From: Mobula hypostoma
Taxonomy: Eukaryota
Length of the DNA stretch: 64,000 nt
Direction: 5' to 3'
Assembly: GCF_963921235.1 (NCBI RefSeq)
Contig: NC_086121.1
Coordinates: 23,126,001 to 23,190,000, forward strand
The notes below the pieces were generated by a model. The model saw only the letters and a list, made by a program, of their open reading frames with translations, did not search any database and was not told where the DNA came from. How positions within the stretch are numbered: position 1 is the stretch's first letter; every line of letters begins with the position of its first letter. Below, in pieces: positions 35,505 to 59,497 of the stretch. The translations under genes and the position numbers were made by a program.

Positions 35505-35852
35505 AGCCGCCTCGGGTCCGCGTCTTCACGCAGACGTTCGGCGCGGGCCCCCGCCCCCGGCTGCTGCTGGTCTGCGAGGCCTCGGGCTTCTTCCCGCTGG
35601 CCGTCGACATCGCCTGGCTGGTCCCCGCCCCCGAGGACGATTCGGACCCCGTCCCCCTCGCCCCGCTCGTCTTTGGCAGCCACCGCCACAACCGCGACGG
35701 CACTTTCAACCTCTCGGCCGAGGTGGCCCTGGAGGGCTGGCCGGAGGAGGAGGAGGGCGGGGGCGGGCCCGGCCCCCTCTACACCTGCCAGGTGACCCAC
35801 CCGGCGCTGGACGCCCCCCTCGCCGTCAACCTCCGGCCGCAGCCCCCCGACG
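35505..35852 (+). CDS. TAPBPL: Ig C1-set domain exon of a tapasin-family (TAPBPL/TAPBPR-like) gene, 348 nt, phase 1-1
   Basis: An AG-free pyrimidine tract (about 35360-35502) ends in CCCCAG, and the donor is G|GTCAGT at 35853. Translation EPPRVRVF...LVCEASGFFPLAVDIAW...LVFGSHRHNRDGTFNLSAEV...YTCQVTHPALDAPL...QPPD has C1-set Cys/Trp/Cys spacing. It resembles tapasin-family C1 domains (C..xGYYPLDV.V.W, FSSHR..DGT.SLS, YTCxVxHxxL..PL). The C1 domain is secure. The exact paralogue is inferred from motif recall plus MLF2 synteny; a B7-H6-like protein is the alternative. Confidence 0.75.
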
Positions 35853-35954
35853 GTCAGTACATGCGGTAATGTGGGTCCTTCTGGGGGGGGGGAACGGGCG
35901 GGGTGGGGGGAGGTCGCGGGTCTGTGACTGGGAGGCGGGAGGGAGAGGGTTAAT

Positions 35955-36972
35955 AGAGCGTAGAACATAGTACAGCACAGTACAGGCCCTTCGGCCCACA
36001 ATGTTGTGCCGACCCTAAAAACCCTGCCTCCCATATAACCCCCCCCACCTTAAATTCCTCCATATACCTGTCTGGTAGTCTCTTAAACTTCACCAGTGTA
36101 TCTGCCTCCACCCCTGACTCAGGCAGTGCATTCCACGCACCGACCACTCTCTGAGTAAAAAACCTTCCTCTAATATCTCCCTTGAACTTCCCACCCCTTA
36201 CCTTAAAGCCATGTCCTCTTGTACTGAGCAGTGGTGCCCTGGGGAAGAGGCGCTGGCTATCCACTCTATCTATTCCTCTTATTATCTTGTACACCTCTAT
36301 CATGTCTCCTCTCATCCTCCTTCTCTCCAAAGAGTAAAGCCCTAGCTCCCTTAATCTCTTATCATAATGCATACTTTCTAAACCAGGCAGCACCCTGGTA
36401 AATCTCCTCTGTACCCTTTCCAATGCTTCCACATCCTTCCTATAGTGAGGTGACCAGAACTAGACACAGTACTCCAAGTGTGGCCTAACCAGAGTTTTAA
36501 AGAGCTGCATCATTACATCGCGACTCTTAAACTCTATCCCTCGACTTATGAAAGCTAACACCCCGTATGCTTTCTTAACTACCCTATCCACCTGTGAGGC
36601 AACTTTCAGGGATCTGTGGACATGTACCCCGAGATCCCTCTGCTCCTCCACATTACCAAGTATCCTGCCATTTACTTTGTACTCTGCCTTGGAGTTTGTC
36701 CTTCCAAAGTGTACCACCTCACACTTCTCCAGGTTGAACTCCATCTGCCACTTCTCAGCCCACTTCTGCATCCTGTCAATGTCTCTCTGCAATCTGTGAC
36801 AATCCTCTACACTATCTACAACACCACCAACCTTTGTGTCATCTGCAAACTTGCCAACCCACCCTTCTACCCCCACATCCAGGTCGTTGATAAAAATCAC
36901 GAAAGGTAGAGGTCCCAGAACAGATCCTTGTAGGACACCACTAGTTACAATCCTCCAATCTGAATGCACTCC
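35955..36972 (-). mobile_element. 5'-truncated CR1-clade LINE (3' ORF2 RT portion plus 3' UTR), inactivated by a nonsense mutation
   Basis: Translations SGV(L)QGSVLGP..FVIFINDLD...KFADDTKVGG and [15 protein letters not shown]...FFTQRVVGAWNALP are typical CR1 ORF2. LEYCV* stands where LEYCVQFWSP is expected. The CR1-type tail lies at about 35955-36010. Confidence 0.93.
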
Positions 36973-36984
36973 TTCTGCCTTGAG

Positions 36985-37700
36985 ATCTACAGCACATCAC
37001 AGGCCATTCGGCCCACAATGTCATGCCGACCATGTAACCAGCATTAGAGACTGCCTAGGATTTCCCTCTCTTTCTCTAAGTTCCTTGTACCTATACAGGA
37101 GTCTCTTAAAAGACCCTATCGTATCCGCCTCCACCACCGTTGCCGTCAGCCCATTCCACGCACTCACCACTCTCTGCGTAAAAAAACTTACCCCTGACAT
37201 CTCCTCTGTACCTACTCCCCAGCACCTTAAACTTGTGTCCTCTTGTAGCAACTATTTCAGCCCTGGGAAAAAGCCTCTGACTATCCACACGATCAATGCC
37301 TCTCCTCATCTTATACACCTCTATCAGGTCACCTCTCATCCTCCGTCGCTCCAAGGAGAAAAGGCCGATTTCACTCAACCTATTCTCATAGGGAAGGCTC
37401 CCCAATCCAGGCAACATCTTTGTAGATCTCCTCTGCACCCTCTCTATGGTTTCCACATCCTTCCTGTAGTGAGGTGACCAGAACTGAGCACAGTACTCCA
37501 AGTGGGGTCTGACCAGTGTCCTATATAGCTGCAACATTACCTCTCGGCTCTTGAACTCAATCCCACGATTGATGAATGCCAACACACCGTACGCCTTCTT
37601 AACCACAGAGTCAACCTGTGCAGCAGCTGTGGACTCGGACCCCAAGATCCCTCTGATCCTCCACGCTGCCAAGAAGTCTTGCCATTAATACTATATCCTG
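36985..37700 (-). mobile_element. Second 5'-truncated CR1 LINE (different subfamily), abutting the first
   Basis: It has its own 3' tail (ACAGGCCATTCGGCCCACAATGTCATGCCGACC on +). ORF2 peptide: VVKKAYGVLAFINRGIEFKSREVMLQLYRTLVRPHLEYCAQFWSPHYRKDV... Confidence 0.92.
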
Positions 37701-37729
37701 TCCGTGGGGGAATAGGTGTCACGAAACGG

Positions 37730-38365
37730 GGATAAGAGGGTTAATCCTCCTTCTGACGGTGGGCGGGTGTCCATACCGGGAGAGAAAAGGTTAATTCAAT
37801 CTCTGATCGGGGAACGGTGGGCGGGGGGGGGGGTGGAGGAGAGAAGGAGTTAATCCTCTCGAGGTAGTGCAACGCGTATCTGTATCACGGGGAGGGAGGA
37901 CCAATCACCTCTCTGGGGAGTGTTGAACTGGGAGTGAGAGGGTTAATTTTCCTTCCGACAGGGGGCCGGGTTGTCCGTATCTGGGAGGCAGAGAGTTAAT
38001 TCCCCCCCACCCCACCCCCCTCTACCTGATCTAGGTGCGGCTGCCTGTGACCGGGAGATGGAGGGTTAATACCCTCTGAGATTGGGACGTCATGTGCAAT
38101 GGGGGGGGGAGAGGGGGTTAATATTCTCTCTGACGGGGGGGGGACTAGTATCTGGCAATAAAAGGGTTAATGTCCCTTAATGGAGGAGGAGGTGCTGTTG
38201 TCAGGAAGAGTGGGGAGAGAGAGAGGGAGGGGAGCGACGGGGAGGGAGAGAGAGGGAGAAAATTAACCCTCTCTCTCCCCTGGATACAGACACCAGTTTC
38301 CCCCGAACATTAACCCTCTCTCTCCCAGATACAGACACCAGTTTCCCCCAAACATTAACCCTCTC
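37730..38365. repeat. Degenerate ~50-60-bp-spaced repeat with a conserved GGGTTAAT core, including a ~46-bp tandem duplication near 38260-38365
   Basis: (G)GTTAAT recurs about 8 times from 37738 to 38170. It then appears inverted (ATTAACCCTCTC) near 38263, 38309 and 38355. Confidence 0.5.
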
Positions 38366-39013
38366 CCTCCTGGTTATACGCACCGAGGACCGTCGACCGG
38401 CCCCCTCTTCCCCCACATTGCCTCCGGCGCTGGTCCGCTCGCCCCCCCCCACCCCCGGCACGGGTTTAACGCGGGTCCGTCGGGCAAGGGGCCTGCGACC
38501 GGGAGGGAGAGGGGTTACAGGTGTACCTCGGACTGAGGGAGCGGGATCCGGGCCCGATATCACCGGCCCGCGTTGCTTCGCGGTCGCAGTACCTCGCCGT
38601 CCGCGACGGTCTGGACTGCCAGTCGCGGCCAGTAAATGCTGATATTTAAAAAGCTGAACTGATTAACTGGCGCGACAAGGGGAGGAACAAGAAGAAACCG
38701 TCCCTGGCCGGTCGAGTGTGCGCACCCGATGAGAGGGGAGAGGGTCACGGGACGGGAGGCTGAGAGAGACGGACAGGGGCAGGGCGAGCCCGGAGGAAGA
38801 TGGAGAGCAGGCAAGGGAGTGAGATGGACAGAAGGAGAAAAAAGAGAGAGAGAAAAAAAGTAGATAAATAAGGGACGGGGTATGAAGGGGAGGAGGGGCA
38901 TGAACGGAAGTTAGAGAAGTCAATGCTCATGCCTCTCCCGTCTCCAGCCTCATATCCCTTTTGCCAGTCGACTTCCCAGCTCTCCCTCCCATCGTTTCCT
39001 ATCGTTTCTGAAG

Positions 39014-39880
39014 AGATGGGACGGGCTAGATGCAGGAAGATTGTTCCCGATGTTGGGGAAGTCCAGAACGAGGGGTCACAGTTTGAGGATAGAGGGGAAG
39101 CCTTTTAGGACCGAGATGAGGAAAAACTTCTTCACACAGAGAGGGGTGAATCTGTGGAATTCTCTGCCCCGTGAAGCAGGGGAGGCTCCCTCAATGAATA
39201 TATTTAAGACGAGGTCAGACAGATTTTTTTTGCAGAGGAGGGGAATTAAGGGTTATAGGGGATTCGAGTACAGGAGCAGGGAGGTACTACTGCAGTTGTA
39301 CAAGGCCTTGGTGAGACCACACCTGGAGTATTGTGTGCAGTTTTGGTCCCCTAATCTGAGGAAAGACATTCTTGCCATAGAGGGAGTACAAAGAAGATTC
39401 ACCAGATTGATTCCTGGGATGGCAGGACTTTCATATGAAGAAAGACTGGATGAACTGGGCTTGTACTCGTTGGAATTTAGAAGATTGAGGGGGGATCTGA
39501 TTGAAACGTATAAGATCCTAAAGGGATTGGACAGGCTAGATGCAGGAAGATTGTTCCCGATGTTGGGGAAGTCCAGAACGAGGGGCCACAGTTTGAGGAT
39601 AGAGGGGAAGCCTTTTAGGACTGAGATGAGGAAAAACTTCTTCACACAGAGAGTGGTGAATCTGTGGAATTCTCTGCCACAGCAAACTGCTGAGGCCAGT
39701 TCATTGGCTATATTTAAGAGGGAGTTAGATGTGGCCCTTGTGGCTACAGGGGTCAGGGGGTATGGAGGGAAGGCTGAGGCGGGGATCTGAGTTGGATGAT
39801 CAGCCATGATCATACTGAATGGCGGTTCAGGCTCGAAGGGCCGAATGGCCTACTCCTGCACCTATTTTCTATGTTTCTAT
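39014..39880 (+). mobile_element. Composite CR1 3' fragment: a short 3' piece (about 39014-39255) followed by a longer piece (about 39258-39880) ending in a TTCTATGTTTCTAT tail
   Basis: ORF 39041-39790 carries FPMLGKSRTRGHSLRIEGKPFRTEMRKNFFTQR twice, plus LYKALVRPHLEYCVQFWSP. The 3' UTR reads GATCAGCCATGATC...GGCCTACTCCTGCACCTATTTTCTATGTTTCTAT. Confidence 0.93.
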
Positions 39881-40224
39881 AAGGCGGGCAGGTGGAGATG
39901 AGTCCGTGGTCGGATCAGCCGTGATCTTATCGAATAGTGGAGCAGGGTCAACGGGACAGACCGGCCCCTGACGACCCCCGTCACCCAGGGCGCGCCCTCT
40001 TCTTGACGCCACCATCGGGGAGGAGGTCCAGGAGCCTGAAGGCATACAGCGCGGCGATTCAGGAACAGATTCTCCCCCCGGCCGGTGATAGGGAAACCCG
40101 ATTTGGACTTGCAGGGATCCACAACTGACATAGATTCTCCAGTCCGACACCAGCGCACCAGGCCCAGGTTAGAATCCGCGGGGCAGCCGGCCTCACCAGA
40201 GGTTTCAATCGTTTCCTTTTGCAG

Positions 40225-40329
40225 ACCAGGCAGCCCGTTACCTGCACGTCGTTTACCAGGGGGCGTTGTTGTCCGTGTTGCTGCTGGTGGCTGTGATGTA
40301 CCTCTGTCGAGGGAACAGGACCCCGACTG
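40225..40329 (+). CDS. TAPBPL: Transmembrane exon of the same gene, 105 nt, phase 1-1: (D)QAARYLHVVYQGALLSVLLLVAVMYLCRGNRTPT
   Basis: Acceptor TTTCCTTTTGCAG| at 40224 and donor G|GTGAGA at 40330. The phase matches the C1 exon. A ~20-residue hydrophobic stretch is followed by basic residues (CRGNR). Confidence 0.8.
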
Positions 40330-40399: not shown

Positions 40400-43300
40400 A
40401 GTCTATCGTTACCCCTGTTATAGGGGGAGTCTCTCATCACCCCTCTAACAGAGGGAGTCTCTCCCCCATCACCCCTGTTACAGTGGGAGTCTCTCCCCCA
40501 TCACCCCTCTTACAGGGGGAGTCTCTCCCCCATCACCCCTGTTACAGTGGGAGTCTCTCCCCCATCACCCCATTACAGAGGGAGTCTCTCCCCATCACCC
40601 CTGTTACAGTGGGAGTCTCTCCCCCATCACCCCTCTTACAGGGGGAGTCTCTCCCCCATCACCCCTGTTACAGTGGGAGTCTCTCCCCCATCACCCCCAT
40701 TACAGAGGGAGTCTCTCCCCATCACCCCTGTTACAGGGGGAGTCTCTCCCCCATCACCCCTGTTACAGAGGGGGTCTCTCCCCCATCACCCCTCTAACAG
40801 AGGGAGTCTCTCCCCCATCACCCCTGTTACAGAGGGAGTCTCTCCCCCATCACCCCTCTAACAGAGGGAGTCTCTCCCCCATCACCCCTCTAACAGAGGG
40901 AGTCTCTCCCCCATCACCCCTGTTACAGAGGGATTCTCTCCCCCATCACCCCGTTACTGAGGGAGTCTCTCCCCCATTACCCCCATTACAGAGGGAGTCT
41001 CTCCCCCATCACCCCTGTTACAGAGGGAGTCTCTCCCCCATCACCCCCGTTACTGAGGGAGTCTCTCCCCCATCACCCCTGTTACAGAGGGAGTCTCTCC
41101 CCCATCACCCCTGTTACAGTGGGAGTCTCTCCCCCATTACCCCCATTACAGAGGGAGTCTCTCCCCATCACCCCTGTTACAGAGGGAGTCTCTCCCCCAT
41201 CACCCCGTTACAGAGGGAGTCTCTCCCCCATTACCCCTGTTACAGAGGGAGTCTCTCCCCCATTACTCCTGTTACAGAGGGAGTGTCTCTCCCATTACCC
41301 CTGTTACAGAGGGAATCTTTCCCCCATCACCCCTGTTACAGAGGGAGTCTCTCCCCCATCACCCCGTTACAGAGGGAGTCTCTCCCCCATTACCCCTGTT
41401 ACAGAGGGAGTCTCTCCCCATTACCCCTGTTACAGAGGGAGTCTCTCCCCCATCACCCCTCTAACAGAGGGAGTCTCTCCCCCATCACCCCTGTTACAGA
41501 GGGATTCTCTCCCCCATCACCCCCGTTACTGAGGGAGTCTCTCCCCCATTACCCCCATTACAGAGGGAGTCTCTCCCCCATCACCCCTGTTACAGAGGGA
41601 GTCTCTCCCCCATCACCCCCGTTACTGAGGGAGTCTCTCCCCCATCACCCCTGTTACAGAGGGAGTCTCTCCCCCATCACCCCTGTTACAGTGGGAGTCT
41701 CTCCCCCATTACCCCCATTACAGAGGGAGTCTCTCCCCATCACCCCTGTTACAGAGGGAGTCTCTCCCCCATCACCCCGTTACAGAGGGAGTCTCTCCCC
41801 CATTACCCCTGTTACAGAGGGAGTCTCTCCCCCATTACTCCTGTTACAGAGGGAGTGTCTCTCCCATTACCCCTGTTACAGAGGGAATCTTTCCCCCATC
41901 ACCCCTGTTACAGAGGGAGTCTCTCCCCCATCACCCCGTTACAGAGGGAGTCTCTCCCCCATTACCCCAGTTACAGAGGGAGTCTCTCCCCATTACCCCT
42001 GTTACAGAGGGAGTCTCTCCCCATTACCCCTGTTACAGAGGGAATCTCTCCCCCATCACCCCTGTTACAGAGGGAATCTCCCCCATCACCCCTGTTACAG
42101 AGGGAGTCTCTCCCCCATTACCCCCATTACAGAGGGAGTCTCTCCCCCCATCACCCCTGTTACTGAAGGAGTCTCTCCCCCATTACCCCTGTTACAGAGG
42201 GAGTCTCTCCCCCATTACTCCATTACAGAGGGAGTCTCTCCCCCATTACTCCATTACAGAGGGAGTCTCTCCCCCATTACCCGTTACAGAGAGAGTCTCT
42301 CCCCATTACCCCTGTTACAGAGGGAGTCTCTCCCCATTACCCCTGTTACAGAGGGAGTCTCTTCCCCCATTACCCCTGTTACAGAGGGAGTCTCTCCCCC
42401 ATCACCCCGTTACAGAGGGAGTCTCTCCCCCATCACCCCTGTTACAGAGGGAGTCTCTCCCCATTACCCCCGTTACAGAGGGAGTCTCTTCCCATTACCC
42501 CTGTTACAGAGGGAGTCTCTCCCCCATTACCCCCATTTCAGAGAGAGTCTCTCCCCCATCACTCCTGTTACAGAGGGAGTCTCTCCCTCATTACCCCTGT
42601 TACAGAGGGAGTCTCTCCCCCATTACTCCTGTTACAGAGGGTGTCTCTCCCCCATTACTCCATTACAGAGGGAGTCTCTCCCCATTCCCCGTTACAGAGG
42701 GAGTCTCTCCCCCATCACCCCTGTTACAGAGGGAGTCTCTCTCCCATCACCCGTTACAGAGGGAGTCTTTCCCCATTACCCCTGTTACAGAGGGAGTCTC
42801 TCCCCCATCACCCCTGTAACAGAGGGAGTCTCTCTCCCATCACCCATTACAGAGGGAGTCCCTCCCCCATCACCCCTGTTACAGAGGGAATCTCTCCCCC
42901 ATTACCCGTTACAGAGGGAGTCTCTCCCCATTACCCCTGTTACAGAGGGAGTCTCTTCCCCATCACCCCTGTTACAGAGGGAGTCTCTCCCCCATCACCC
43001 CATTACAGAGGGAGTCTCTCCCCCATCACCCCTGTTACAGAGGGAGTCTCTCCCCCATCACCCCGTTACAGAGGGAGTCTCTTCCCATTACCCCTGTTAC
43101 AGAGGGAGTCTCTCCCCCATTACCCCCATTTCAGAGAGAGTCTCTCCCCCCATCACTCCTGTTACAGAGGGAGTCTCTCCCCCATCACCCCTGTTACAGA
43201 GGGTGTCTCTCCCCCATTACTCCATTACAGAGGCAGTCTCTCCCCCATCACCCCTGTTACAGAGGGGGTCTCTCCCCCATCACCCCTGTTACAGTGGGAG

Positions 43301-45048
43301 TCTCTCCCCCATTACCCGTTACAGAGGGAGTCTCTCCCCATTACCCCTGTTACAGAGGGAGTCTCTCCCCCATCACCCCTGTTACAGAGGGAGTCTCTCC
43401 CATTACCCCTGTTACAGAGGGAGTCTCTTCCCCATCACCCCTGTTACAGAGGGAGTCTCTCCCCCATCACCCCGTTACAGAGGGAGTCTCTCCCCCATCA
43501 CCCCTTTTACAGAGGGAGTCTCTCTCCCATCACCCGTTACAGAGGGAGTCTCTCCCCCATCACCCCTGTTACAGAGGGAGTCTCTCCCCCATTACTCCGT
43601 TACAGAGGGAGTCTCTCCCCCATTACTCCGTTACGGAGGGAGTCTCTCCCCCATTACTCCATTACAGAGGGAGTCTCTCCCCATTACCCCCATTACAGAG
43701 GGAGTCCCTCCCCCATCACCCCCATTACAGAGGGAATCTCTCCCCCATTACCTGTTACAGAGGGAGCCTCTCCCCATTACCCCTGTTACAGAGGGAGTCT
43801 CTCCCCCATTACCCCATTACAGAGAGAGTCTCTCCCCATTGCGCCTGTTACATTGGGGGTCTCTCCCCCATTACCCCCATTACAGAGGGAGTCTCTCGTT
43901 ACCTTGTTACAGAGGGAGTCTCTCTCCCATCACCCATTACAGAGGGAGTCCCTCCCCCATCACCCCTGTTACAGAGGGAATCTCTCCCCCATTACCCGTT
44001 ACAGAGGGAGTCTCTCCCCATTACCCCTGTTACAGAGGGAGTCTCTTCCCCATCACCCCTGTTACAGAGGGAGTCTCTCCCCCATCACCCCGTTACAGAG
44101 GGAGTCTCTCCCCCATCACCCCTGTTACAGAGGGAGTCTCTCTTCCATCACCCGTTACAGAGGGAGTCTCTCCCCATTACCCCTGTTACAGAGGGAGTCT
44201 CTCCCCCATCACCCCTGTTACAGAGGGAGTCTCTCTCCCATCACCCATTACAGAGGGAGTCCCTCCCCCATCACCCCTGTTACAGAGGGAATCTCTCCCC
44301 CATTACCCGTTACAGAGGGAGTCTCTCCCCATTACCCCTGTTACAGAGGGAGTCTCTCCCCATTACCCCTGTTACAGAGGGAGTCTCTCCCCCATTACTC
44401 CGTTACAGAGGGAGTCTCTCCCCCATTACTCTGTTACAGAGGGAGTCTCTCCCCCATTACCCCGTTACAGAGGGAATCTCTCCCCCATTACCCCCGTTAC
44501 GGAGGGAGTCTCTCCCCCATTACTCCATTACAGAGGGAGTCTCTCCCCATTACCCCCATTACAGAGGGAGTCCCTCCCCCATCACCCCCGTTACAGAGGG
44601 AATCTCTCCCCCATTACCTGTTACAGAGGGAGCCTCTCCCCATTACCCCTGTTACAGAGGGAGCCTCTCCCCATTACCCCATTACAGAGAGAGTCTCTCC
44701 CCATTGTGCCTGTTACATTGGGGGTCTCTCCCCCATTACCCCCATTACAGAGGGAGTCTCTCGTTACCTTGTTACAGAGGGAGTCTCTCCCCCCATTACC
44801 CCTGTTACAGAGGGAGTCTCCCCATTACCCCTGTTACAGAGGGAGTCTCTCCCCCATTACCCCATTACAGAGGGAGTCTCTCCCCCATTACCCCATTACA
44901 GAGGGAGTCTCTCGTTACCCTGTTACAGAGGGAGTCTCCCCATTACCCCTGTTACAGAGGGAGTCTCTCCCCCATTACCGCATTACAGAGGGAGTCTCTC
45001 CCCCATTACCCCATTACAGAGGGAGTCTCTCGTTACCCTGTTACAGAG
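40400..45048. repeat. ~32-bp (29-33) minisatellite, about 150 units, consensus GAGGGAGTCTCTCCCCCATCACCCCTGTTACA, filling the TM-to-cytoplasmic intron
   Basis: Direct periodicity, for example unit starts at 40451 and 40483. Confidence 0.97.
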
Positions 45049-45113
45049 GCAGTGCGTGAAGGGGTTTGAACCTTCGAATTTAACTCTCTCCTTTGCCCTG
45101 TTTCTCTCCTCAG

Positions 45114-45142
45114 AAATGCCCAGCGTCCCAGGACCAGACAAG
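45114..45142 (+). CDS. TAPBPL: Short cytoplasmic exon, 29 nt, phase 1-0: (E)MPSVPGPDK
   Basis: Acceptor CTTTGCCCTGTTTCTCTCCTCAG| and donor AAG|GTGAGA. The phase is compatible with the TM exon. It sits in the only unique sequence just after the 32-bp array. Confidence 0.7.
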
Positions 45143-45542
45143 GTGAGATGTTTGCTCCCCGTAAAATAATCCTGTCCTGTGAAAAGTTTAGATGATGAGA
45201 ACACTCAGTCCTCTTTTATTGTCATTTAGAAATGCGTACACGCCTTAAGAAATAATACAATGTTCCCCCGGGGGAGTGATATCACAGGAAAACAGGATAA
45301 ACCAGATCCTAACACTGACAGAACCACATAATTACTACACATAGTTAAAGCAGTGCAAAGCAATACCGTAATTTGAAGAGCAGACCACGGGCACGGTAAA
45401 AAAATTCTCGAAGTCCCGAGTCGATCGACTCCCGAGTGCCCGATAGCACCTTTTCTAACTCTCCCGCGCCCCTCCCCTCCCACTCTTCCGCGCCCCCCCC
45501 CACCCCTTCCTCCATGTTTACTCTGCTCTCTGCCTGTTGCAG

Positions 45543-45557
45543 ACAACACAAGACTAA
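45543..45557 (+). CDS. TAPBPL: Probable last coding exon, phase 0: TTQD-stop, followed by the 3' UTR
   Basis: A CTAAC branch-point-like motif near 45455 is followed by an AG-free pyrimidine tract to TTGCAG| (45542), then ACA ACA CAA GAC TAA. Confidence 0.55.
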   Translation, partial: TTQD

Positions 45558-46144
45558 AGGCGATGGAAGGGCCTGCGCGGGACGGAGCGCGTCGATGGCG
45601 CTCGCCGTTCGAGGATGCGAGGGAGTGACGGGGTGGGGGGAGCCCTCCGCTCCTACTGAGGGGCCTGACACTCTCCCTTTTACCTCCCTCCCCCGAGCTC
45701 TCTCCCTCCCCACTCCCCGCTTCCCTCGGCTCCGAGTGTCGGCACCCTCGAGGCGGTGCCGGAGCGCAGAGGGATTCCGACGCTCCCCGAACGTGGACGC
45801 GCCCGTCCAGGGCCACGTTTTATAGAACTCCCGTCTGGAGTACCACCTTCCCGTTACAGGGAAGGTGTGTGTTTGTGTGTGGGAGGGGGAGTTGGCGGGA
45901 GACTCGGAGAGGAGGCTCACACCGTGACGCTTCCTGGATTCGAGGGCGCGAGGGTCCGGATGAACGTGGGACGTTCTCCCCCACCCCCCGTGCGCCGGGG
46001 GAGGGGCGCACGGGGAATGGGGGGGAGACGGACCAGGCATGGGGGAAGGTGGGAGTGGTTTCGCTAGGTGTCTGGTTTTTAATTTAATCCGCTGGGCAGC
46101 AAACTTCATGTGCTGCGTTCCATGTTCAATACCCTGAAGGTCAA

Positions 46145-49100
46145 GGGACTGGGGGACCTCGGTGTATGAGGGTCGGACACACACCGTGAGCAGTCGGGAG
46201 TGTCGAGGGACAGAGGGACCTCGGTGTATGAGGGTAGGACACACACAGTGAGCAGTGGGGAGTGTCGAGGGACAGGGGGACCTCGGTGTATGAGGGTAGG
46301 ACACTCACTGTGAACGGTGGGGAGTGTCGAGGGACAGGGGGACCTCGGTGTATGAGGGTGAGACACTCACTGTGAACGGTGGGGAGTGTCGAGGGACAGG
46401 GGGACCTCGGTGTATGAGGGTGAGACACTCACTGTGAACAGTGGGGAGTGTCGAGGGACAGGGGGACCTCGGTGTATGAGGGTAGGACACACACAGTGAG
46501 CAGTGGGGAGTGTCGAGGGACAGGGGGACCTCGGTGTATGAGGGTGAGACACTCACTGTGAACAGTGGGGAGTGTCGAGGGACAGGGGGACCTCGGTGTA
46601 TGAGGGTAGGACACTCACTGTGAACGGTGGGGAGTGTCGAGGGACAGAGGGACCTCGGTGTATGAGGGTAGGACACTCACTGTGAACGGTGGGGAGTGTC
46701 GAGGGACAGAGGGACCTCGGTGTATGAGGGTGAGACACTCACTGTGAACAGTGGGGAGTGTCGAGGGACAGGGGGACCTCGGTGTATGAGGGTAGGACAC
46801 ACACAGTGAGCAGTGGGGAGTGTCGAGGGACAGAGGGACCTCGGTGTATGAGGGTGAGACACTCACTGTGAACAGTGGGGAGTGTCGAGGGACAGGGGGA
46901 CCTCGGTGTATGAGGGTAGGACACACACAGTGAGCAGTGGGGAGTGTCGAGGGACAGGGGGACCTCGGTGTATGAGGGTGAGACACTCACTGTGAACAGT
47001 GGGGAGTGTCGAGGGACAGGGGGACCTCGGTGTATGAGGGTAGGACACTCACTGTGAACGGTGGGGAGTGTCGAGGGACAGAGGGACCTCGGTGTATGAG
47101 GGTAGGACACTCACTGTGAACGGTGGGGAGTGTCGAGGGACAGAGGGACCTCGGTGTATGAGGGTGAGACACTCACTGTGAACAGTGGGGAGTGTCGAGG
47201 GACAGGGGGACCTCGGTGTATGAGGGTAGGACACACACAGTGAGCAGTGGGGAGTGTCGAGGGACAGAGGGACCTCGGTGTATGAGGGTCGGACACACAC
47301 AGTGAGCAGTGGGGAGTGTCGAGGGACAGGGGGACCTCGGTGTATGAGGGTAGGACACTCACTGTGAACGGTGGGGAGTGTCGAGGGACAGAGGGACCTC
47401 GGTGTATGAGGGTGAGACACTCACTGTGAACAGTGGGGAGTGTCGAGGGACAGGGGGACCTCGGTGTATGAGGGTAGGACACACACAGTGAGCAGTGGGG
47501 AGTGTCGAGGGACAGAGGGACCTCGGTGTATGAGGGTGAGACACTCACTGTGAACAGTGGGGAGTGTCGAGGGACAGGGGGACCTCGGTGTATGAGGGTA
47601 GGACACACACAGTGAGCAGTGGGGAGTGTCGAGGGACAGGGGGACCTCGGTGTATGAGGGTGAGACACTCACTGTGAACAGTGGGGAGTGTCGAGGGACA
47701 GGGGGACCTCGGTGTATGAGGGTAGGACACTCACTGTGAACGGTGGGGAGTGTCGAGGGACAGAGGGACCTCGGTGTATGAGGGTAGGACACTCACTGTG
47801 AACGGTGGGGAGTGTCGAGGGACAGAGGGACCTCGGTGTATGAGGGTGAGACACTCACTGTGAACAGTGGGGAGTGTCGAGGGACAGGGGGACCTCGGTG
47901 TATGAGGGTAGGACACACACAGTGAGCAGTGGGGAGTGTCGAGGGACAGAGGGACCTCGGTGTATGAGGGTCGGACACACACAGTGAGCAGTGGGGAGTG
48001 TCGAGGGACAGGGGGACCTCGGTGTATGAGGGTAGGACACTCACTGTGAACGGTGGGGAGTGTCGAGGGACAGAGGGACCTCGGTGTATGAGGGTGAGAC
48101 ACTCACTGTGAACAGTGGGGAGTGTCGAGGGACAGGGGGACCTCGGTGTATGAGGGTAGGACACTCACTGTGAACGGTGGGGAGTGTCGAGGGACAGAGG
48201 GACCTCGGTGTATGAGGGTGAGACACTCACTGTGAACAGTGGGGAGTGTCGAGGGACAGAGGGACCTCGGTGTATGAGGGTCGGACACACACAGTGAGCA
48301 GTGGGGAGTGTCGAGGGACAGAGGGACCTCGGTGTATGAGGGTAGGACACACACCGTGAACGGTGGGGAGTGTCGAGGGACAGGGGGACCTCGGTGTATG
48401 AGGGTGAGACACTCACTGTGAACGGTGGGGAGTGTCGAGGGACAGGGGGACCTCGGTGTATGAGGGTAGGACACACACCGTGAACGGTGGGGAGTGTCGA
48501 GGGACAGGGGGACCTCGGTGTATGAGGGTGAGACACTCACTGTGAACGGTGGGGAGTGTCGAGGGACAGGGGGACCTCGGTGTATGAGGGTGAGACACTC
48601 ACTGTGAACGGTGGGGAGTGTCGAGGGACAGGGGGACCTCGGTGTATGAGGGTAGGACACACACAGTGAGCAGTGGGGAGTGTCGAGGGACAGAGGGACC
48701 TCGGTGTATGAGGGTCGGACACACACCGTGAACGGTGGGGAGTGTCGAGGGACAGGGGGACCTCGGTGTATGAGGGTGAGACACTCACTGTGAACGGTGG
48801 GGAGTGTCGAGGGACAGGGGGACCTCGGTGTATGAGGGTAGGACACACACCGTGAACGGTGGGGAGTGTCGAGGGACAGGGGGACCTCGGTGTATGAGGG
48901 TGAGACACTCACTGTGAACGGTGGGCAGTGTCGAGGGACAGGGGGACCTCGGTGTATGAGGGTAGGACACACACAGTGAGCAGTGGGGAGTGTCGAGGGA
49001 CAGAGGGACCTCGGTGTATGAGGGTCGGACACACACAGTGAGCAGTGGGGAGTGTCGAGGGACAGGGGGACCTCGGTGTACGAGGGTAGGACACTCACTG

Positions 49101-50403
49101 TGAGCAGTGGGGAGTGTCGAGGGACAGGGGGACCTCGGTGTATGAGGGTAGGACACACACCGTGAACGGTGGGGAGTGTCGAGGGACAGGGGGACCTCGG
49201 TGTATGAGGGTAGGACACACACTGTGAGCAGTGGGGAGTGTCGAGGGACAGGGGGACCTCGGTGTATGAGGGTAGGACACACACCGTGAACGGTGGGGAG
49301 TGTCGAGGGACAGGGGGACCTCGGTGTATGAGGGTGAGACACTCACTGTGAACGGTGGGGAGTGTCGAGGGACAGGGGGACCTCGGTGTATGAGGGTAGG
49401 ACACACACAGTGAGCAGTGGGGAGTGTCGAGGGACAGAGGGACCTCGGTGTATGAGGGTCGGACACACACAGTGAGCAGTGGGGAGTGTCGAGGGACAGA
49501 GGGACCTCGGTGTATGAGGGTAGGACACTCACTGTGAACGGTGGGGAGTGTCGAGGGACGGGGGACCTCGGTGTATGAGGGTAGGACACACACAGTGAGC
49601 AGTGGGGAGTGTCGAGGGACAGAGGGACCTCGGTGTATGAGGGTCGGACACACACAGTGAGCAGTGGGGAGTGTCGAGGGACAGAGGGACCTCGGTGTAT
49701 GAGGGTAGGACACACACAGTGAGCAGTGGGGAGTGTCGAGGGACAGAGGGACCTCGGTGTATGAGGGTAGGACACACACAGTGAGCAGTGGGGAGTGTCG
49801 AGGGACAGAGGGACCTCGGTGTATGAGGGTAGGACACACACAGTGAGCAGTGGGGAGTGTCGAGGGACAGGGGGACCTCGGTGTATGAGGGTAGGACACA
49901 CACAGTGAGCAGTGGGGAGTGTCGAGGGACAGAGGGACCTCGGTGTATGAGGGTAGGACACACACAGTGAGCAGTGGGGAGTGTCGAGGGACAGAGGGAC
50001 CTCGGTGTATGAGGGTAGGACACACACAGTGAGCAGTGGGGAGTGTCGAGGGACAGAGGGACCTCGGTGTATGAGGGTAGGACACACACAGTGAGCAGTG
50101 GGGAGTGTCGAGGGACAGGGGGACCTCGGTGTATGAGGGTAGGACACACACAGTGAGCAGTGGGGAGTGTCGAGGGACAGGGGAACCTCAGCGTACGAGG
50201 ATAGGACACATACAGTGAGTGATGGGGCGTGTCGAGGGACAGGGGGATCTTGGTTAGTGAGGTAAGGACACTCACTGTGAACGGTGGGGAGTGTCGAGGG
50301 ACAGAGGGACCTCAGCGTACGAGGGTGAGACACTCACTGTGAACGGTGGGGAGTGTCGAGGGACAGAGGGACCTCAGCGTACGAGGGTGGGACACACTCT
50401 GTG
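46145..50403. repeat. 62-bp minisatellite, about 69 units, consensus GGGGAGTGTCGAGGGACAGGGGGACCTCGGTGTATGAGGGTGAGACACTCACTGTGAACAGT
   Basis: Direct periodicity; the repeat-derived ORFs step by 62 bp. Two main variants occur: CACTCACTGTGAAC and CACACACAGTGAGC. Confidence 0.98.
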
Positions 50404-50590
50404 AATCGCTTCCAACTCCCTACCCAGCTCCCTGCCTCTAACTCCCTCCAAGCCTCAAACTCCTGCAACTGCCTCCAATCCCCTCCCTAAATGCCTGTGC
50501 CTCACTCGAAAAGATTTACGCCTTCCAGCCCCCCTCCCTCCACTTTTGACCCTATCCCGCTGCTGGGAACTTGTCAACTTTGATACTGTT

Positions 50591-50640
50591 AATAAAGTTT
50601 GGCCTACGGAAACCAGGCTGTCTGTCTGTCTTGTCTATCC
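50591..50640 (+). terminator. Candidate polyadenylation signal of the tapasin-like gene (AATAAA plus GU-rich downstream element)
   Basis: AATAAA at 50591-50596 is followed about 20 nt later by CTGTCTGTCTGTCTTGTCT. It is the first AATAAA I found on + downstream of the stop at 45557. Confidence 0.6.
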
Positions 50641-50644
50641 CCGG

Positions 50645-53700: not shown

Positions 53701-54193
53701 GTATTTTTGGGGCGTGGCCGGGCGGCTGATGTCACTGCGCCTGGGTGGGAGCTCGCGCTGACGCCTGCCAGCCGTTGTGATCTAAACCCGCCCAGAATGA
53801 CGCGGGGGGAATAAAACCAGCAGGAAAAGAATCAGAATGGTAAAGCAGAGTTTGAAAGGGTGGAAAATAGTCGCAGACCAGCTGAACGGAGACGCTGACA
53901 ATGACATGAAACCTAATTGCGACGCCGATTCTCAGAAATGGCGGCTGTCGTCACGGGAGAGGAAAGTCGCCCCGCGACGTGCGGTTTAATGACGTCGGAC
54001 GCAGTGAGGTCCGGGGGACGCCTCCGGCCGCGCTGACGTCAGACGCAGTGAGGTCGGGCGTGAAGACGCGGCGATGGCGGACGACGTCATTGGCTGTCCG
54101 GAGAAAGGTGGGGGGGGTGTGCCCAGGCACCCGAGACGACTTCCGGTGGAGGCGACGGGAACTTCCGGTGCTGGAGAAGAGGAAAATGTAAGA
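53700..54193 (+). promoter_or_regulatory. MLF2: CpG-island housekeeping-type promoter and probable exon 1 of MLF2
   Basis: The region is CpG-dense. Motifs: full CRE TGACGTCA at 54034-54041 plus half-sites; a YY1-like AAATGGCGGC at 53936; an inverted CCAAT (ATTGG) near 54089; two ETS/GABP ACTTCCGG at 54139 and 54161; a good donor AT|GTAAGA at 54188. Assignment to MLF2 is by position and orientation. Confidence 0.65.
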
Positions 54194-54199
54194 AAACTG

Positions 54200-55005
54200 A
54201 GGGACGGGGGAAAGAGAAGGAGAAACGGGGGAGTGGGGTGTGGTGGAGAGGGAGTAAGAGGTGCGGAGGGGGTGAAGTGGGGAAGGAGAGGGTGGGGAGG
54301 GATGTGGGGGAGCGGAGGAGAGAGGGAGGTAGGGGGAAGACGAGGGAGAGAGAGGGGAGGGTCGGAGAGAGGGAGAGAGCGAAGGGAGGGAGAGGAGGAA
54401 GGGGGCAGAGGGAGAGGAGGTAGGGGAGAGAGAGGAGGGAGGGAGTAGGGGGAGAAGGGGAGGGGGAAGGAGAGGGGGAGGGGAGAGGCAGAGGGGGGAG
54501 GGGAGAGAGAGGAAGGAGGGGAGGAGGAGAGAGGGAGAGGGGGTAGGGGGAGAGAGAGAGGAGGGAGGAAGTGGAGGGAGGGAGGGAGAGGAGGAAGGGG
54601 GCAGAGGGAGAGGAGGTAGGGGGAGAGAGAAGGGAGGGAGGGAGTAGGGGGAGAAGGGGAGGGGGAAGGAGAGGGGGAGGGGAGAGGCAGAGGGGGCAGG
54701 GGAGAGAGAGGAGAGAGGGAGGGGGGTAGGGGAGAGAGAGGAGGGAGGGGAGGGAGAGAGAGAGGGAGAGGGGGCAGGGGAGAGAGAGAGGAGGGAGGGA
54801 GTGGAGGGAGGGAGTAGGGGGAGGGGGAGGGGGAGAGGCAGAGGGGGTAGGGGAGAGAGAGGAGGGGGAGGGAGTAGGGGGAGAGAGAAGAGGGAGGGAG
54901 GGGAGGGAGTAGGGGGAGAAGGGGAGGGGGAGGGGAGAGGCAGAGGGGGAGGGGAAGGGAGAGGGGGTGGGGGGAGAGAGAGGAGGGAGGGAGCGGAGAG
55001 AGGGA
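54200..55005. repeat. Polypurine (GA-rich) low-complexity tract
   Basis: Almost exclusively G and A on + (GGGAGAGAGAGGAGGGAGG...). Confidence 0.9.
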
Positions 55006-55007
55006 GT

Positions 55008-55500
55008 AACATAGAAACATAGAAAATAGGTGCAGGAGTAGGCCATTCGGCCCTTTGAGCCTGCACCGCCATTTATTATGATCATGGCTGATCATCCAAC
55101 TCAGAACCCCGCCCCAGCCTTCCCTCCATACCCCCTGACCCCCGTAGCCACCAGGGCCATATCTAACTCCCTCTTAAATATAGCCAATGAACTGGCCTCA
55201 ACTGTTTCCTGTGGCAGAGAATTCCACAGATTCACCACTCTCTGTGTGAAGAAGTTTTTCCTAATCTCGGTCCAAAAAGGCTTCCCCTCTATCCTCAAAC
55301 TGTGACCCCTCGTTCTGGACTTCCCCAACATCGGGAACAATCTTCCTGCATCTAGCCTGTCCAATCCCTTTAGGATCTTATACGTTTCAATCAGATCCCC
55401 CTTCAATCTTCTAAATTCCAACGAGTACAAGCCCAGTTCATCCAGTCTTTCTTCATATGAAAGTCCTGCCATCCCAGGAATCAATCTGGTGAACCTTCTT
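55008..55500 (-). mobile_element. 5'-truncated CR1 3' end, same subfamily as the 39258-39880 copy
   Basis: An (ACATAGAA)n tail lies at 55008-55025. Peptide IPGMAGLSYEERLDELGLYSLEFRRLKGDLIETYKILKGLDRLDAGRLFPMLGKSRTRGHSL is near-identical to the 39 kb copy. Confidence 0.93.
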
Positions 55501-55548
55501 TGATCCAGGCATCATCCAGGTGAATCTCCTCTGCACCCTCTCTAATCC

Positions 55549-56137
55549 ATAGAAACATAGACAATAGGTGCAGGAGTAGGCCATTCGGCCCTTCGAGCCT
55601 GCACCGCCATTCAGTACGATCATGGCTGATCATCCAACTCAGAACCCTGTACCTGCCTTCCCTCCATACCCCCTGATCCCCGTAGCCACAAGGGCCATAC
55701 CTAACCTTGTACAATATCTATCCTTGTACAACTGCAGTAGTACGTCCCTGCTCCTGTACTCGAATCCTCTCGCTATAAATGCCAGCATACCATTTGCCTT
55801 TTTCACCGCCTGCTGTACCTGCATGCCCACTTTCAATGACTGGTGTATAATGACACCCAGGTCTCGTTGCACCTCCCCTTTTCCTTATCGGCCACCATTC
55901 AGATAATAATCTGTTTTCCTATTTTTGCCACCAAAGTGGATAACCTCACATTTATCTCATTAAATTGCATCTGCCATGAGTTTGCCCACTCACCCAACCT
56001 ATCCAAGTCACCCTGCATCCTCTTAGCATCCTCCTCACAGCTAACACTGCCGCCCAGCTCCGTGTCATCCGCAAACTTGGAGATGCTGCGTTTAATTCCC
56101 TCATCCAAGTCATTAATATATATTGTAAACAACTGGG
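55549..56137 (-). mobile_element. CR1 fragment with a ~420-bp internal deletion, running into the assembly gap
   Basis: [29 protein letters not shown]...RGFEYRSRDVLLQLYK is joined almost directly to MALVATGIRGYGGKAG and the tail. Confidence 0.9.
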
Positions 56138-56282
56138 NNNNNNNNNNNNNNNNNNNNNNNNNNNNNNNNNNNNNNNNNNNNNNNNNNNNNNNNNNNNNNN
56201 NNNNNNNNNNNNNNNNNNNNNNNNNNNNNNNNNNNNNNNNNNNNNNNNNNNNNNNNNNNNNNNNNNNNNNNNNNNNNNNNNN
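56138..56282. other. Assembly gap (145 N)
   Basis: Run of N. Confidence 1.
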
Positions 56283-58440
56283 AGAGGGGGGAGGGGAGGG
56301 AGAGGGGGGAGGGGAGGGAGGGGGGGAGGGGAGGGGGAGAGGGGGTGGGGGGAGAAGGAGAGGGGGGAGGGGAGAGGGAGAGGGGGTAGGGGGAGAGAGA
56401 GGAGGGAGGGAGCGGAGAGAGGGAGTAGGGGGGAGAAGGAGAGGGGGAGGGGAGAGGGGGTAGGGGGAGAGAGGAGGGGGGAGGGAGGGGAGGGGGAGAG
56501 GGGGTGGGGGGAGAAGGAGAGGGGGGAGGGGAGAGGGAGAGGGGGTAGGGGGGAGAGAGGGAGTAGGGGGGAGAAGGGGAGGGGAGAGGGGGTAGGGAGA
56601 GAGAGGAGGGGGGAGGGAGGGAATGGGGGGAGAAGGGGAGGGGGAGAGAGGAGAGAGGAGGGGGGAGGGGAGGGGGAGAGGGGGTAGGGGGGAGAGAGAG
56701 GAGGGAGGGAGTGGAGAGAGGGAGTAGGGGGGAGAAGGAGAGGGGGAGGGGAGAGGGGGTAGGGGGAGAGAGGAGGGGGAAGGGGAGAGGGGGTAGGGGG
56801 AGAGAGGAGGGGGGAGGGAGGGAATGGGGGAGAAGGGGAGGGGGAGGGGGAGAGAGGAGAGGGGGGAGGGAGGGGGGAGAGGGGGTAGGGGGAGAGAGAG
56901 GAGGGAGGGAGCGGAGAGAGGGAGTAGGGGGGAGAAGGAGAGGGGGGAGGGGAGAGGGGATAGGGGGAGAGAGGAGGGGGAGGGAGGGAATGGGGGGAGA
57001 AGGGGAGGGGGAGAGAGGGGAGGGGGCAGGGAGAGGGGGTGGGGAGAGAGAGAGGAGGGAGGGAGTAGAGGGGAGAGGGGGAGGGGGCAGGGGGAGAGGG
57101 CTGAGAAGAGAGTAGGAAGGGGAAAGGTGGGGAGGGAGAGGGGGAGAGAGGAACAGAAAGGAGAGAGAAAGGGAAGGAGAGAGGGAGGGAGGGGGCAGGG
57201 AGAGAGGGGAGGAAGGGGAGAGGGGTGAAGGAGATGGGAGGGAGGGGAGAGAGAGGGCTGAGAAGTGAGAAGAGAGTAGGAAGGGGAGGGAGGGAGAGGA
57301 GGAGAGAGGAACAGAGAGGGGGAGGAGAGAGAAAGGGAAGGGGAGGGGGGGCAGCGACAGATGTGGGCAGGGGTAGAGAGAGCTGGAGTGGGAGGTGAAG
57401 AGTGGATGAGGGGTAGAGAGATGGAGGGGAAGGGAGAGGGGGTAGAGATAGGTGGATGGAGATGGAGAGAATTGGGGATGGGGAGGGACAGCGGTGTGAG
57501 ACGGGAGAGGTAGGAGGAGGGTGGAAGAGCGTGGTGGCGAGATGGGACTAGAGGGAGAGGTGGAGTGGGGCAGAGTATGGTGGAGGGAGGGAGGGAGGTG
57601 GGGTGACAGAGGGAGGGGGCTGAGTGGTGGGGAGAGGAAGGCGGAGGGGAAGAGTGAGGTTGATGGAGAGAAAGGGGGAGGAGAGTGAGAGGGCAGAGAT
57701 AGGTGGAGGGAGGGAGAGAGTGGTAGGGAGATAGAGAGTTTGGGGAGTGAGGAGGAGTCGAGAGAGGTGGAGGGAGTGACGGAAGGAAGAGACGCAGGGA
57801 GGAGGAGAGAGGGGGCTCGAGGTGGGTGTCGAGAGCTGGAGGGGGAGGGAGGCGGAGGGACTGGTGGGGAGAGGGAGGGAGAGAGAATTGTGGGGAGAGG
57901 GAGAGAAGGGGGTTGTGGTAGATGGAGAGAGAGAGGTGGGGGTGAGAAGGGGAGACAGCTGGATGGAGGGAGGGAGAGAGGTGCGGCGATGGAGGGAGGA
58001 GAGAGGTGAGGCTGGTGAGAGAGCTGGGGAGGGGGGGCAGGATGGGAGTGGAGGGAGGGGACGAGGAGCGGGAGGGAGACACGGGGCGGGCAGGGGTGGG
58101 GGGAGTGAGAAAGCGAAGAGCCTGAGAGGGGAGTTCCGGATGAGATGGAGACGAGGGGAACGGACGGACGAGGCAGGAGGGGAACGGAAGGGGTGACCGG
58201 GGGAGAAGTCGGGGTGTCGAGCTGAGGCGTTGGATATGACGGCGGGGGTGTGGAGGAGGGGGAATGTCGGGCAAGAGGGTGAGGGGGGGAGAGACGGGGG
58301 GGTGAAACGGGACGGAGGGAGGGGGACAGCAGTGATAGCGGAGGGGAGAGTCTGAGAGAACGGGGAAGCGGGACAGAGAGATTGACACTGGGGGGGGAGC
58401 GACAGGAGTGGGGGAGAGATTTGCAGGTGTGGGCAGCTTT
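56283..58440. repeat. Polypurine/G-rich low-complexity tract
   Basis: GA-rich on +, degrading towards 58400. Confidence 0.88.
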
Positions 58441-58519
58441 GGGAGGGCTGGGGGTGGGAGAGAGCCTAGTGTGATTGATTTTAGATGCTAATGTAATCTT
58501 GTTTTCTATTTTGTGTTTC

Positions 58520-59340
58520 CTTTACACCCTCCCCCCTTCACCCCCCCTTCGCCCTCCCCCCTTCGCCCTCCCCCCTTCGCCCTCCCCCCTTCGCCCTCCC
58601 CCTTCACCCTCCCCTTCACCCTCCCCTTCACACTCCCCCTTCACCCTCCTTCCCCACCCCCTCTCCCCTTCCCTCCTCCCTCTCCTCCCCCTCCCCCTCC
58701 CCCTCCCTCTCCCCTCCCCCTCTCTCTCCCCTCCCCCTCCCTCCTTCACCCTCCCTCCTTCCCCCTCCCCCTCCCCTCCTTCCCCCTCCCCCTCCCTTCC
58801 TTACCCCTCTCCCCTTCCCCCTCTCCCCTACCCCCTCTCCCCTTCCCCCTCTCCCCTCACCTCCTTCCCCCTCCCCCTCCCCTCCTTCCCCCTCCTCCCT
58901 CTTCCCCCTCCTCCCTCTCCCCTCTTCCCCCCTCCCCCCCTCCCCTCCTCCCTCCCCACCCTCTCCCTCACTCTCNNNNNNNNNNNNNNNNNNNNNNNNN
59001 NNNNNNNNNNNNNNNNNNNNNNNNNNNNNNNNNNNNNNNNNNNNNNNNNNNNNNNNNNNNNNNNNNNNNNNNNNNNNNNNNNNNNNNNNNNNNNNNNNNN
59101 NNNNNNNNNNNNNNNNNNNNNNCCCTCTCCCCTTCCCCCTCTCCCCTCACCTCCTTCCCCCTCCCCCTCCCCTCCTTCCCCCTCCTCCCTCTTCCCCCTC
59201 CTCCCTCTCCCCTCTTCCCCCCTCCCCCCCTCCCCCTCACTCCCTCCCCACCCTCTCCCTCACACCCTTCCCCCTGCCCTCACATCCCCTTTGCCTGCCT
59301 GTTACCCACCGTCCTCCGTCCCCCGTCTCCCTCTCTCCCC
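58520..59340. repeat. Polypyrimidine (CT-rich) low-complexity tract interrupted by the second gap
   Basis: C/T-only runs, including (CCCCCTTCGCCCT)n at about 58530-58620. Confidence 0.88.
58976..59122. other. Assembly gap (147 N); its flanks are near-identical ~130-bp sequences, so the contig ends probably overlap
   Basis: About 58835-58975 and 59123-59275 both start CCCTCTCCCCTTCCCCCTCTCCCCTCACCTCCTTCCCCC. Confidence 0.9.
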
Positions 59341-59343
59341 CAG

Positions 59344-59497
59344 GGACCCGTTCGCTGCCCACCGCCAGCACATGTCTGCACTTTTCGGGGGCCTCGGCTC
59401 CCCGCTGGGCTTCGACCCCTTCCTGAGCCTGACCGATGGCCGCACCGCCCTCGCTCCCCACCCCGGCGCCCTGCAGCACTCCCGCCGGGCAATACAG
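59344..59497 (+). CDS. MLF2: Myeloid leukemia factor 2 coding exon, 154 nt, phase 2-0: DPFAAHRQHMSALFGGLGSPLGFDPFLSLTDGRTALAPHPGALQHSRRAIQ
   Basis: Acceptor CTCTCTCCCCCAG| and donor CAG|GTTGGT. The peptide matches the human MLF2 N-terminal region as I recall it ([30 protein letters not shown]...SRRMQ). Confidence 0.88.

Follow-up and report, generated by a model that had tools for sequence, protein, structure and literature searches.

The window analysed here, a 64-kb stretch of the genome of the devil ray Mobula hypostoma (assembly GCF_963921235.1), very probably contains the C-terminal exons of the ray orthologue of TAPBPR, with MLF2 downstream on the same strand. TAPBPR is one lineage of the tapasin family, and its HGNC symbol is TAPBPL. 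Four exons encode an immunoglobulin (Ig) C1 domain, a transmembrane span and a short cytoplasmic tail, and a full-length phylogeny that joins them to their counterparts in other rays places the gene with the TAPBPR-like genes of sharks. The gene pair is correctly read as such in a first-pass annotation of the same DNA, made from the letters of the sequence, but it is ordinary: the paralogue neighbourhood of tapbpl in cartilaginous fish is already published.

Exon Chain and Product of the Ray TAPBPR Gene

All four TAPBPR exons lie on the forward strand, every splice site follows the AG/GT rule, and the exons can be joined in phase:

35505–35852, + strand: IgC1-domain exon of TAPBPR; 348 nt, phase 1/1, acceptor ccccag, donor gtcagt
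40225–40329, + strand: connecting-peptide, transmembrane and juxtamembrane exon of TAPBPR (DQAARYLHVVYQGALLSVLLLVAVMYLCRGNRTPT); 105 nt, phase 1/1, acceptor ttgcag, donor gtgaga
45114–45142, + strand: exon 3 of TAPBPR, cytoplasmic tail, (E)MPSVPGPDK; 29 nt, phase 1 to 0; compare EMRPSVPGPVK in the stingray Hypanus
45543–45557, + strand: coding part of the last TAPBPR coding exon, TTQD and the TAA stop; acceptor ctgttgcag, with 16 pyrimidines among the 20 bases before AG

The 348-nt, phase 1/1 layout of the first exon is the usual one for an Ig-domain exon. Its 115-aa translation matches the Pfam C1-set (E = 2.3e-5) and bears the canonical Cys...Trp...Cys-x-V-x-H pattern. The exon is 76% GC, with a GC content at third codon positions (GC3) of 0.97, and it encodes an acidic, glycine-rich insert, EEEEGGGGPGP, which is absent from the stingray orthologue.

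Downstream of the IgC1 exon, a hydrophobicity scan of the forward strand gave a single convincing membrane span, located in 40225–40329. The span reads VVYQGALLSVLLLVAVMYLC, and the tail that follows it reads RGNRTPTEMPSVPGPDKTTQD, with KTTQD at its end. A scan of all acceptors beyond position 45142 led to ctgcctgttgcag followed by ACA ACA CAA GAC TAA at 45543–45557, so that the spliced product of the four exons comprises 165 aa and ends in ...LRPQPPDDQAARYLHVVYQGALLSVLLLVAVMYLCRGNRTPTEMPSVPGPDKTTQD at the stop codon. Within this joined peptide, no lysine was found in the transmembrane span and no KKxx or KKKPY motif in the tail. A rival last exon at 45230–45331 (KCVHALRNN...TDRTT and a stop) is likewise in frame; it was ruled out because the exon at 45543 fits both the TTED end of the stingray protein and the end of the annotated coding sequence (CDS).

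The first-pass annotation had claimed that four exons splice in phase into a C1 domain, a transmembrane span and a tail, and the splice sites, the phases and the collinearity of the 165-aa product with the Hypanus protein confirm it. The two positions by which it delimited the feature, 35505 and 59497, are exact exon boundaries.

Orthologues in Other Rays

When the IgC1 peptide was compared by a HMMER scan with 1.84 billion representative proteins, there was one strong match (P0001, E = 5e-40, 74% identity), the 'tapasin-related protein-like, partial' of the stingray Hypanus sabinus. The Hypanus models used were XP_059815087 / XP_059815403 (P0001, P0151). Over the C1 domain, the transmembrane span and the tail, the 165-aa product of the window is 72–74% identical to the Hypanus protein. 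Past its C1 domain the latter goes on with ...RPRPPADETAGYLRIIYQGVLLSALLLVAGMYLRRGNRTPSEMRPSVPGPVKTTED, in the same order of C1 domain, transmembrane span and tail, and its last four residues are nearly the same; the aligned C-termini, ...EMPSVPGPDK-TTQD in the window and ...EMRPSVPGPVK-TTED in Hypanus, are collinear to the stop codon.

The 363-aa sister model in Hypanus (P0151) supplies part of a tapasin-type N-domain and the IgV domain, and the orthologue of the manta Mobula birostris, also named 'tapasin-related protein-like' (P0184), has the N-domain and IgV as well. Both orthologues have the same exon order as the window gene and the same TT(Q/E)D end, and in all three rays the gene is stretched over tens of kilobases of repeats. 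Unlike the window gene, the Hypanus and M. birostris models are partial and lie on short unplaced contigs.

Assignment to the Tapasin Family

A C1 exon could in principle come from another gene with a C1-set domain, such as B7-H6 (NCR3LG1), a butyrophilin-like gene, a major histocompatibility complex (MHC) gene of class I or II or an Ig constant gene. A search of PDB with the single IgC1 sequence leaves room for such an origin, with HLA-DR beta at 8.6e-9, TAPBPR at 1.9e-8 and B7-H6 at 2.1e-8; since these E-values are equal, the single-sequence search decides nothing. Against it, the best single-domain matches among the 1.84 billion representatives are all annotated as tapasin-related proteins, at 50–65 bits, whereas MHC chains reach at most 42 bits. 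The tapasin-related matches come from sevengill, whale and bamboo sharks, coelacanth, lungfish, birds and a caecilian. A profile built from ray and shark C1 domains gave human TAPBPR as the best single domain in PDB, with 77.6 bits, 14 bits above B7-H6 (63.4 bits); tapasin was not found in the top 60 of this profile search. In a tree of C1 domains only, the tapasin family, including the window sequence, is split from MHC with support of 96/96.

The domain order points the same way. In ligands of the B7-H6 or butyrophilin type a V domain precedes C1, whereas the 74%-identical stingray protein has a tapasin-family N-domain and an IgV domain upstream of its C1 domain. An origin of the exon from another C1-set gene is thus close to refuted, and the clustering with B7-H6, MHC or similar domains against which the first-pass annotation had cautioned was not observed: the peptide belongs with the tapasin family.

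As a side observation, the strongest summed matches to the C1 query include proteins of about 320–2200 aa with 3–10 tandem C1-set domains (P0002–P0014); P0002 is a 'titin-like' protein of 1105 aa from Carcharodon carcharias (XP_041031359), and P0004 is a cyprinid Ig-like protein.

Lineage within the Tapasin Family

Three lineages of the family have been described: tapasin, TAPBPR (the human gene TAPBPL) and a third, called 'TAPBPL', which was lost in placentals (Grimholt 2018, PMC5824609; Kaufman's review, PMC9586880). All three occur among the library matches, where they were told apart by their names and by their tails (KKxx or KKKPY). We constructed a full-length maximum-likelihood tree of 32 sequences in which the rays were represented by the stingray and manta orthologues and by the C-terminus from the window. 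In it, support of 100/100 divides TAPBPR from tapasin and the third lineage taken together, and the rays together with the window sequence group with the shark TAPBPR-like genes at 100/98. A placement of the rays on the side of tapasin and the third lineage is rejected by the approximately unbiased (AU) test (p = 0.017).

Sequence motifs agree with this tree. The N-domain motif typical of TAPBPR, ..FHADCAGDQVDCEV.. (HADC...C-E), is present in the orthologues of stingray and manta but missing in nine of nine third-lineage sequences and in both tapasins checked. Tapasin (TAPBP) shares with the window gene's family the N-domain, IgV, IgC1 and transmembrane span, and the client, MHC class I, would be the same in the ray. 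It differs in its transmembrane lysine, through which it docks on TAP, in its KKxx tail for retrieval to the endoplasmic reticulum (both seen in frog, caecilian and bird), and in being MHC-linked; the window gene has neither the lysine nor the tail, as expected for TAPBPR and unlike tapasin, and its neighbour is MLF2 rather than an MHC gene. The third lineage (lungfish, sturgeon, caecilian and frog, annotated as 'tapasin-related protein-like') has a C1 domain similar to that of the window gene, but most of its members end in ..KKKPY or ..KRKPY, lack the LHADC motif and form their own clade next to tapasin at 100/100.

Human TAPBPR (TAPBPL, 12p13.3; structures 5WER, 5OPI, 7RNO and 9C96) falls by the tree into the same orthology group as the window gene. 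It has the same succession of IgC1 domain, single transmembrane span and short tail, without the TAP-docking lysine or KKxx, and its C1 domain is about 35–40% identical to that of the ray; the GC3 of 0.97 and the EEEEGGGGPGP insert are features of the ray exon that the human gene does not share.

A number of points speak against assigning the window gene to TAPBPR and must be set beside this evidence. The placement in the lineage leans on the Hypanus and M. birostris orthologues, and the trees held no cartilaginous-fish tapasin or third-lineage sequence. The C1-only tree puts the ray sequences, window and Hypanus together, outside all other tapasin-family C1 domains as their sister and does not separate the sub-lineages, and the AU tests on C1 alone are non-significant (p = 0.09 and 0.28), so that they neither refute nor demonstrate the TAPBPR placement. 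The window covers no more than the C-terminal third of the gene, and its four exon junctions are supported by splice consensus and by predicted proteins of orthologues. The first AATAAA or ATTAAA signals past the TAPBPR stop occur at 50591 and 53810, which leaves 5 kb free of a canonical poly(A) signal. As for the neighbouring MLF2, satellite makes up most of the stretch that separates the two genes, and in such arrays even a gap-free long-read assembly can err.

The position of the rays in the C1-only tree would fit a tapasin-family gene that is not the TAPBPR orthologue, be it an additional paralogue, ancient or specific to rays, or the ray orthologue of either tapasin or the third lineage. 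The divergence of the ray protein, just 36–37% identical to shark TAPBPR-like proteins on a branch of 1.08 substitutions per site in the full-length tree, could be read in the same sense. The full-length topology with its AU test, the HADC...C-E motif, the lack of a transmembrane lysine and of a KKxx or KKKPY tail and the proximity of MLF2, which shares a block with TAPBPL in human, all oppose it, and the long branch has a simple possible cause in the GC3 of 0.97; we regard this alternative as very unlikely. Compositional drive is in our view a plausible cause of both the long ray branch and the odd C1-only placement. The proposal in the first-pass annotation that the gene belongs to the TAPBPR/TAPBPL lineage therefore agrees with the full-length tree and its AU test, as well as with the library and PDB profile matches.

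Presumed Integrity and Apparent Annotation of the Gene

No N-terminal or IgV exon was found inside the window. These exons must sit past its left edge, on the far side of the satellite that takes up more than 35 kb of the intron preceding the IgC1 exon. A decaying or truncated remnant, with its upstream exons lost or cut off by this satellite so that no functional TAPBPR is left, would look similar in the window, the more so as satellites swamp the introns of the gene and the annotations of Hypanus and M. birostris offer no more than partial models of it on short unplaced contigs. Yet the four exons are all open and have consensus splice sites, the tail is conserved with that of the stingray to the last residues, and a full-size product of 443 aa has been called at this position in M. 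hypostoma. We consider a remnant highly improbable and the ray TAPBPR to be, by these signs, presumably expressed and intact.

The 443-aa product comes from a gene annotated on the + strand of GCA_963921235.1, the CDS of which stops 38 nt short of the point where the coding part of LOC134341807 begins. In the window, the distance from the TAPBPR stop at 45557 to the ATG at 45595 is exactly 38 nt. Because the spacing is equal in the annotation and in the window, we take the window TAPBPR as already annotated by NCBI at full length; it appears, from the 38-nt spacing, to be that 443-aa gene. The suggestion of the first-pass annotation that the gene is possibly unannotated is not supported in view of this coincidence.

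MLF2 Exons and the Split Start Codon

Downstream of TAPBPR the window contains the start of the gene read here as MLF2 and the first coding exon of an NCBI gene model:

53936–54187, + strand: MLF2 exon 1, 5' untranslated region (UTR) and AT of the start codon; donor AAAAT/gtaaga; 54126–54187 matched by transcript
54188–59343, + strand: MLF2 intron 1; GA/CT-rich simple repeats, CR1 fragments and both assembly gaps
59344–59497, + strand: MLF2 exon 2, G of the ATG and then DPFAAHRQHMS...RRAIQ; 154 nt, cccccag/G GAC CCG ... ATA CAG/gttggt
45595–45635 (end approximate), + strand: first coding exon of the NCBI LOC134341807 model (MALAVRG.EGVTG), 38 nt after the TAPBPR stop

Exon 2 translates as DPFAAHRQHMSALFGG...RRAIQ. 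The first-pass annotation had placed an MLF2 exon on the same strand about 14 kb after the TAPBPR stop, and indeed this exon lies 13.8 kb beyond it and is 100% identical to part of the LOC134341807 product. A region-restricted search with exon 2 retrieved two proteins, the product of M. hypostoma LOC134341807 (100%) and a 241-aa product (94%) translated from a transcript-like Logan contig of a related ray. The 241-aa product carries Pfam PF10248, begins with MDPFAAHRQHMS and ends in ...PRYDW, as human MLF2 does. In the Atlas, the clusters closest to it bear the name Myeloid leukemia factor 2 (0.97), and an MLF1-like cluster comes next at 0.96. Pfam gave no match on the single MLF2 exon, nor on the TAPBPR transmembrane exon. 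With respect to MLF2 of human 12p13.31, the ray exon encodes the conserved N-terminal segment DPFxxHRQHMS...PFLS(I/L)TDG.

In the messenger RNA contig of the related ray, the 5' UTR matches window positions 54126–54187 (58 of 61 bases) and continues directly with 59344–59497; it departs from the window sequence precisely at the exon 1 donor. Since the transcript joins these two segments, the MLF2 start codon is split as AT/G (54185–54189 / 59343–59346) over an intron of 5.2 kb, and the ray protein starts at the methionine right before DPF. The transcript spans intron 1, which means that both gaps lie inside this intron and that the sequences flanking them are parts of a single gene, correctly ordered and in frame. 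The exon 1 region shows a CpG observed/expected ratio of 1.2–1.3, and the stretch 53900–54200, which resembles a CpG island with a ratio of 1.33, contains three motifs resembling the cAMP response element (TGACGT, TGACGTCA and ACGTCA, at 53990, 54034 and 54084). It is likely the MLF2 promoter, as these sequence features would fit one of the housekeeping type.

The NCBI model LOC134341807 ('uncharacterized protein', 246 aa) translates an open 5' UTR from its start 38 nt past the TAPBPR stop, differs from the window at residue 8 (R against C) and diverges from the MLF2 transcript product in its C-terminal part, after ...SLLDNM. The translated 5' UTR and the departure past ...SLLDNM account for its being named 'uncharacterized'. 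The model is MLF2 with an N-terminus that is probably an artefact, the other reading being a sign of read-through from TAPBPR; the segment 45595–45635 itself is probably TAPBPR 3' UTR or an artefactual extension of the MLF2 5' UTR. It should be noted that the public M. hypostoma MLF2 model is therefore mis-built, beginning in the flank of TAPBPR.

Adjacency of TAPBPR and MLF2 and Gene Order

The TAPBPR stop and MLF2 exon 1 are about 8.5 kb apart, on the same strand and in tail-to-head orientation. Runs of N occur in the window at 56138–56282 and 58976–59122 only, and there is no assembly gap between 35505 and 56137; the stretch from TAPBPR to MLF2 exon 1 is continuous sequence, so the adjacency is independent of scaffolding. 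It could still be an assembly artefact, produced by a mis-join or a collapse among the satellites at 46.1–53.7 kb: some 7 of the 8.5 kb between the genes consist of tandem arrays, and the sole corroboration, the NCBI gene calls, apparently derives from the same assembly. We assign this explanation a very small probability, as the interval is free of gaps, the transcript bridges the two gaps further on, and linkage is expected from the single conserved block that holds TAPBPR and MLF2 in human and chicken (PMC2917037, PMC12937304). A misjoin at the gaps, the danger pointed out in the first-pass annotation, was looked for, and both gaps proved to be in MLF2 intron 1, bridged by the related-ray messenger RNA.

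In human, TAPBPL is in the same chromosomal block as MLF2 (PMC2917037, PMC6394470), the order in 12p13.31 being TAPBPL ... MRPL51 ... COPS7A, MLF2, PTMS (PMC2917037). Chicken chromosome 1 has the order TAPBPL, SCNN1A, VAMP1 ... COPS7A, MLF2, PTMS, CD4 (PMC12937304). In white shark and elephant fish, the chromosome-12 MHC paralogue includes tapbpl alongside cd4 and lag3 (Verissimo et al. 2023, PMC10751288). The devil ray gene is tied to this chromosome-12-type paralogue through MLF2 as the next gene downstream, the other marker genes falling outside the window; the linkage of the 12p13 type claimed in the first-pass annotation is upheld, MLF2 being a gene of the human 12p13.31 block (PMC2917037). 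Rays thus retain a TAPBPR orthologue in this paralogue, as already published for white shark and elephant fish, which adds little beyond a good annotation.

Direct adjacency is a different matter. Whereas many genes separate TAPBPL from MLF2 in human, none does in the devil ray window. In the teleost Denticeps the gene downstream of TAPBPR is a synaptobrevin gene, and a tblastn search with ray MLF2 found no MLF2 within about 10 kb downstream of TAPBPR in Denticeps, the sturgeon Acipenser or the sevengill shark Heptranchias; in white shark there is no gene call within 10 kb downstream. The 'compact ancestral cluster' of the first-pass annotation, with the two genes as original neighbours, is not supported by the Denticeps neighbour, by the VAMP1...COPS7A genes between the two in human and chicken or by the shark and sturgeon results. 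The TAPBPR–MLF2 linkage is conserved; as for direct adjacency, this ray is so far the one species in which it was observed. The adjacency provides a checkable marker for reconstructing the gene order of the chromosome-12-type MHC paralogue in elasmobranchs.

Two bolder readings may be considered together, namely that rays make TAPBPR–MLF2 read-through or conjoined transcripts, or that direct adjacency is the ancestral order of jawed vertebrates and the VAMP1...COPS7A block was inserted later in bony vertebrates. Read-through may exist because the NCBI MLF2 model starts 38 nt past the TAPBPR stop and splices into MLF2 exon 1, with no canonical poly(A) signal for 5 kb; if true, it would tie an immune chaperone to a housekeeping promoter region. 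We regard these readings as unlikely.

Predicted Function

TAPBPR acts as a tapasin-related chaperone that binds peptide-receptive MHC class I and edits its peptide cargo outside the TAP-bound loading complex. Orthology, together with a membrane span free of lysine and a C-terminus lacking KKxx, suggests that the ray protein may likewise edit MHC class I peptides without docking on TAP.

Repeat Content of the Window

Tandem repeats make up most of the 64 kb, and unique sequence forms small islands that hold the exons. The main arrays are as follows:

2–35295, no strand: 47-bp satellite, about 750 copies with 94% match (Tandem Repeats Finder), uniform in composition
40409–45053, no strand: 32/63-bp satellite in the intron between the transmembrane exon and exon 3 of TAPBPR
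46140–50405: 62-bp satellite, tandem repeat
most of 51.1–57.3 kb: G-rich and GA-rich arrays, tandem repeats
59695–61418 and 63197–64000: 42-bp minisatellite derived from a CR1 ORF2 segment, within MLF2 intron 2

The left half of the window is taken up by the 47-bp satellite, within the intron that precedes the IgC1 exon of TAPBPR. The satellites at 40409–45053 and 46140–50405 give rise to very long spurious open reading frames on either strand, up to 1258 aa, none of which is a gene. The occurrence of a divergent, GC-rich ray TAPBPR within very large satellite arrays may explain the fragmented state of the gene in the stingray, manta and devil-ray assemblies.

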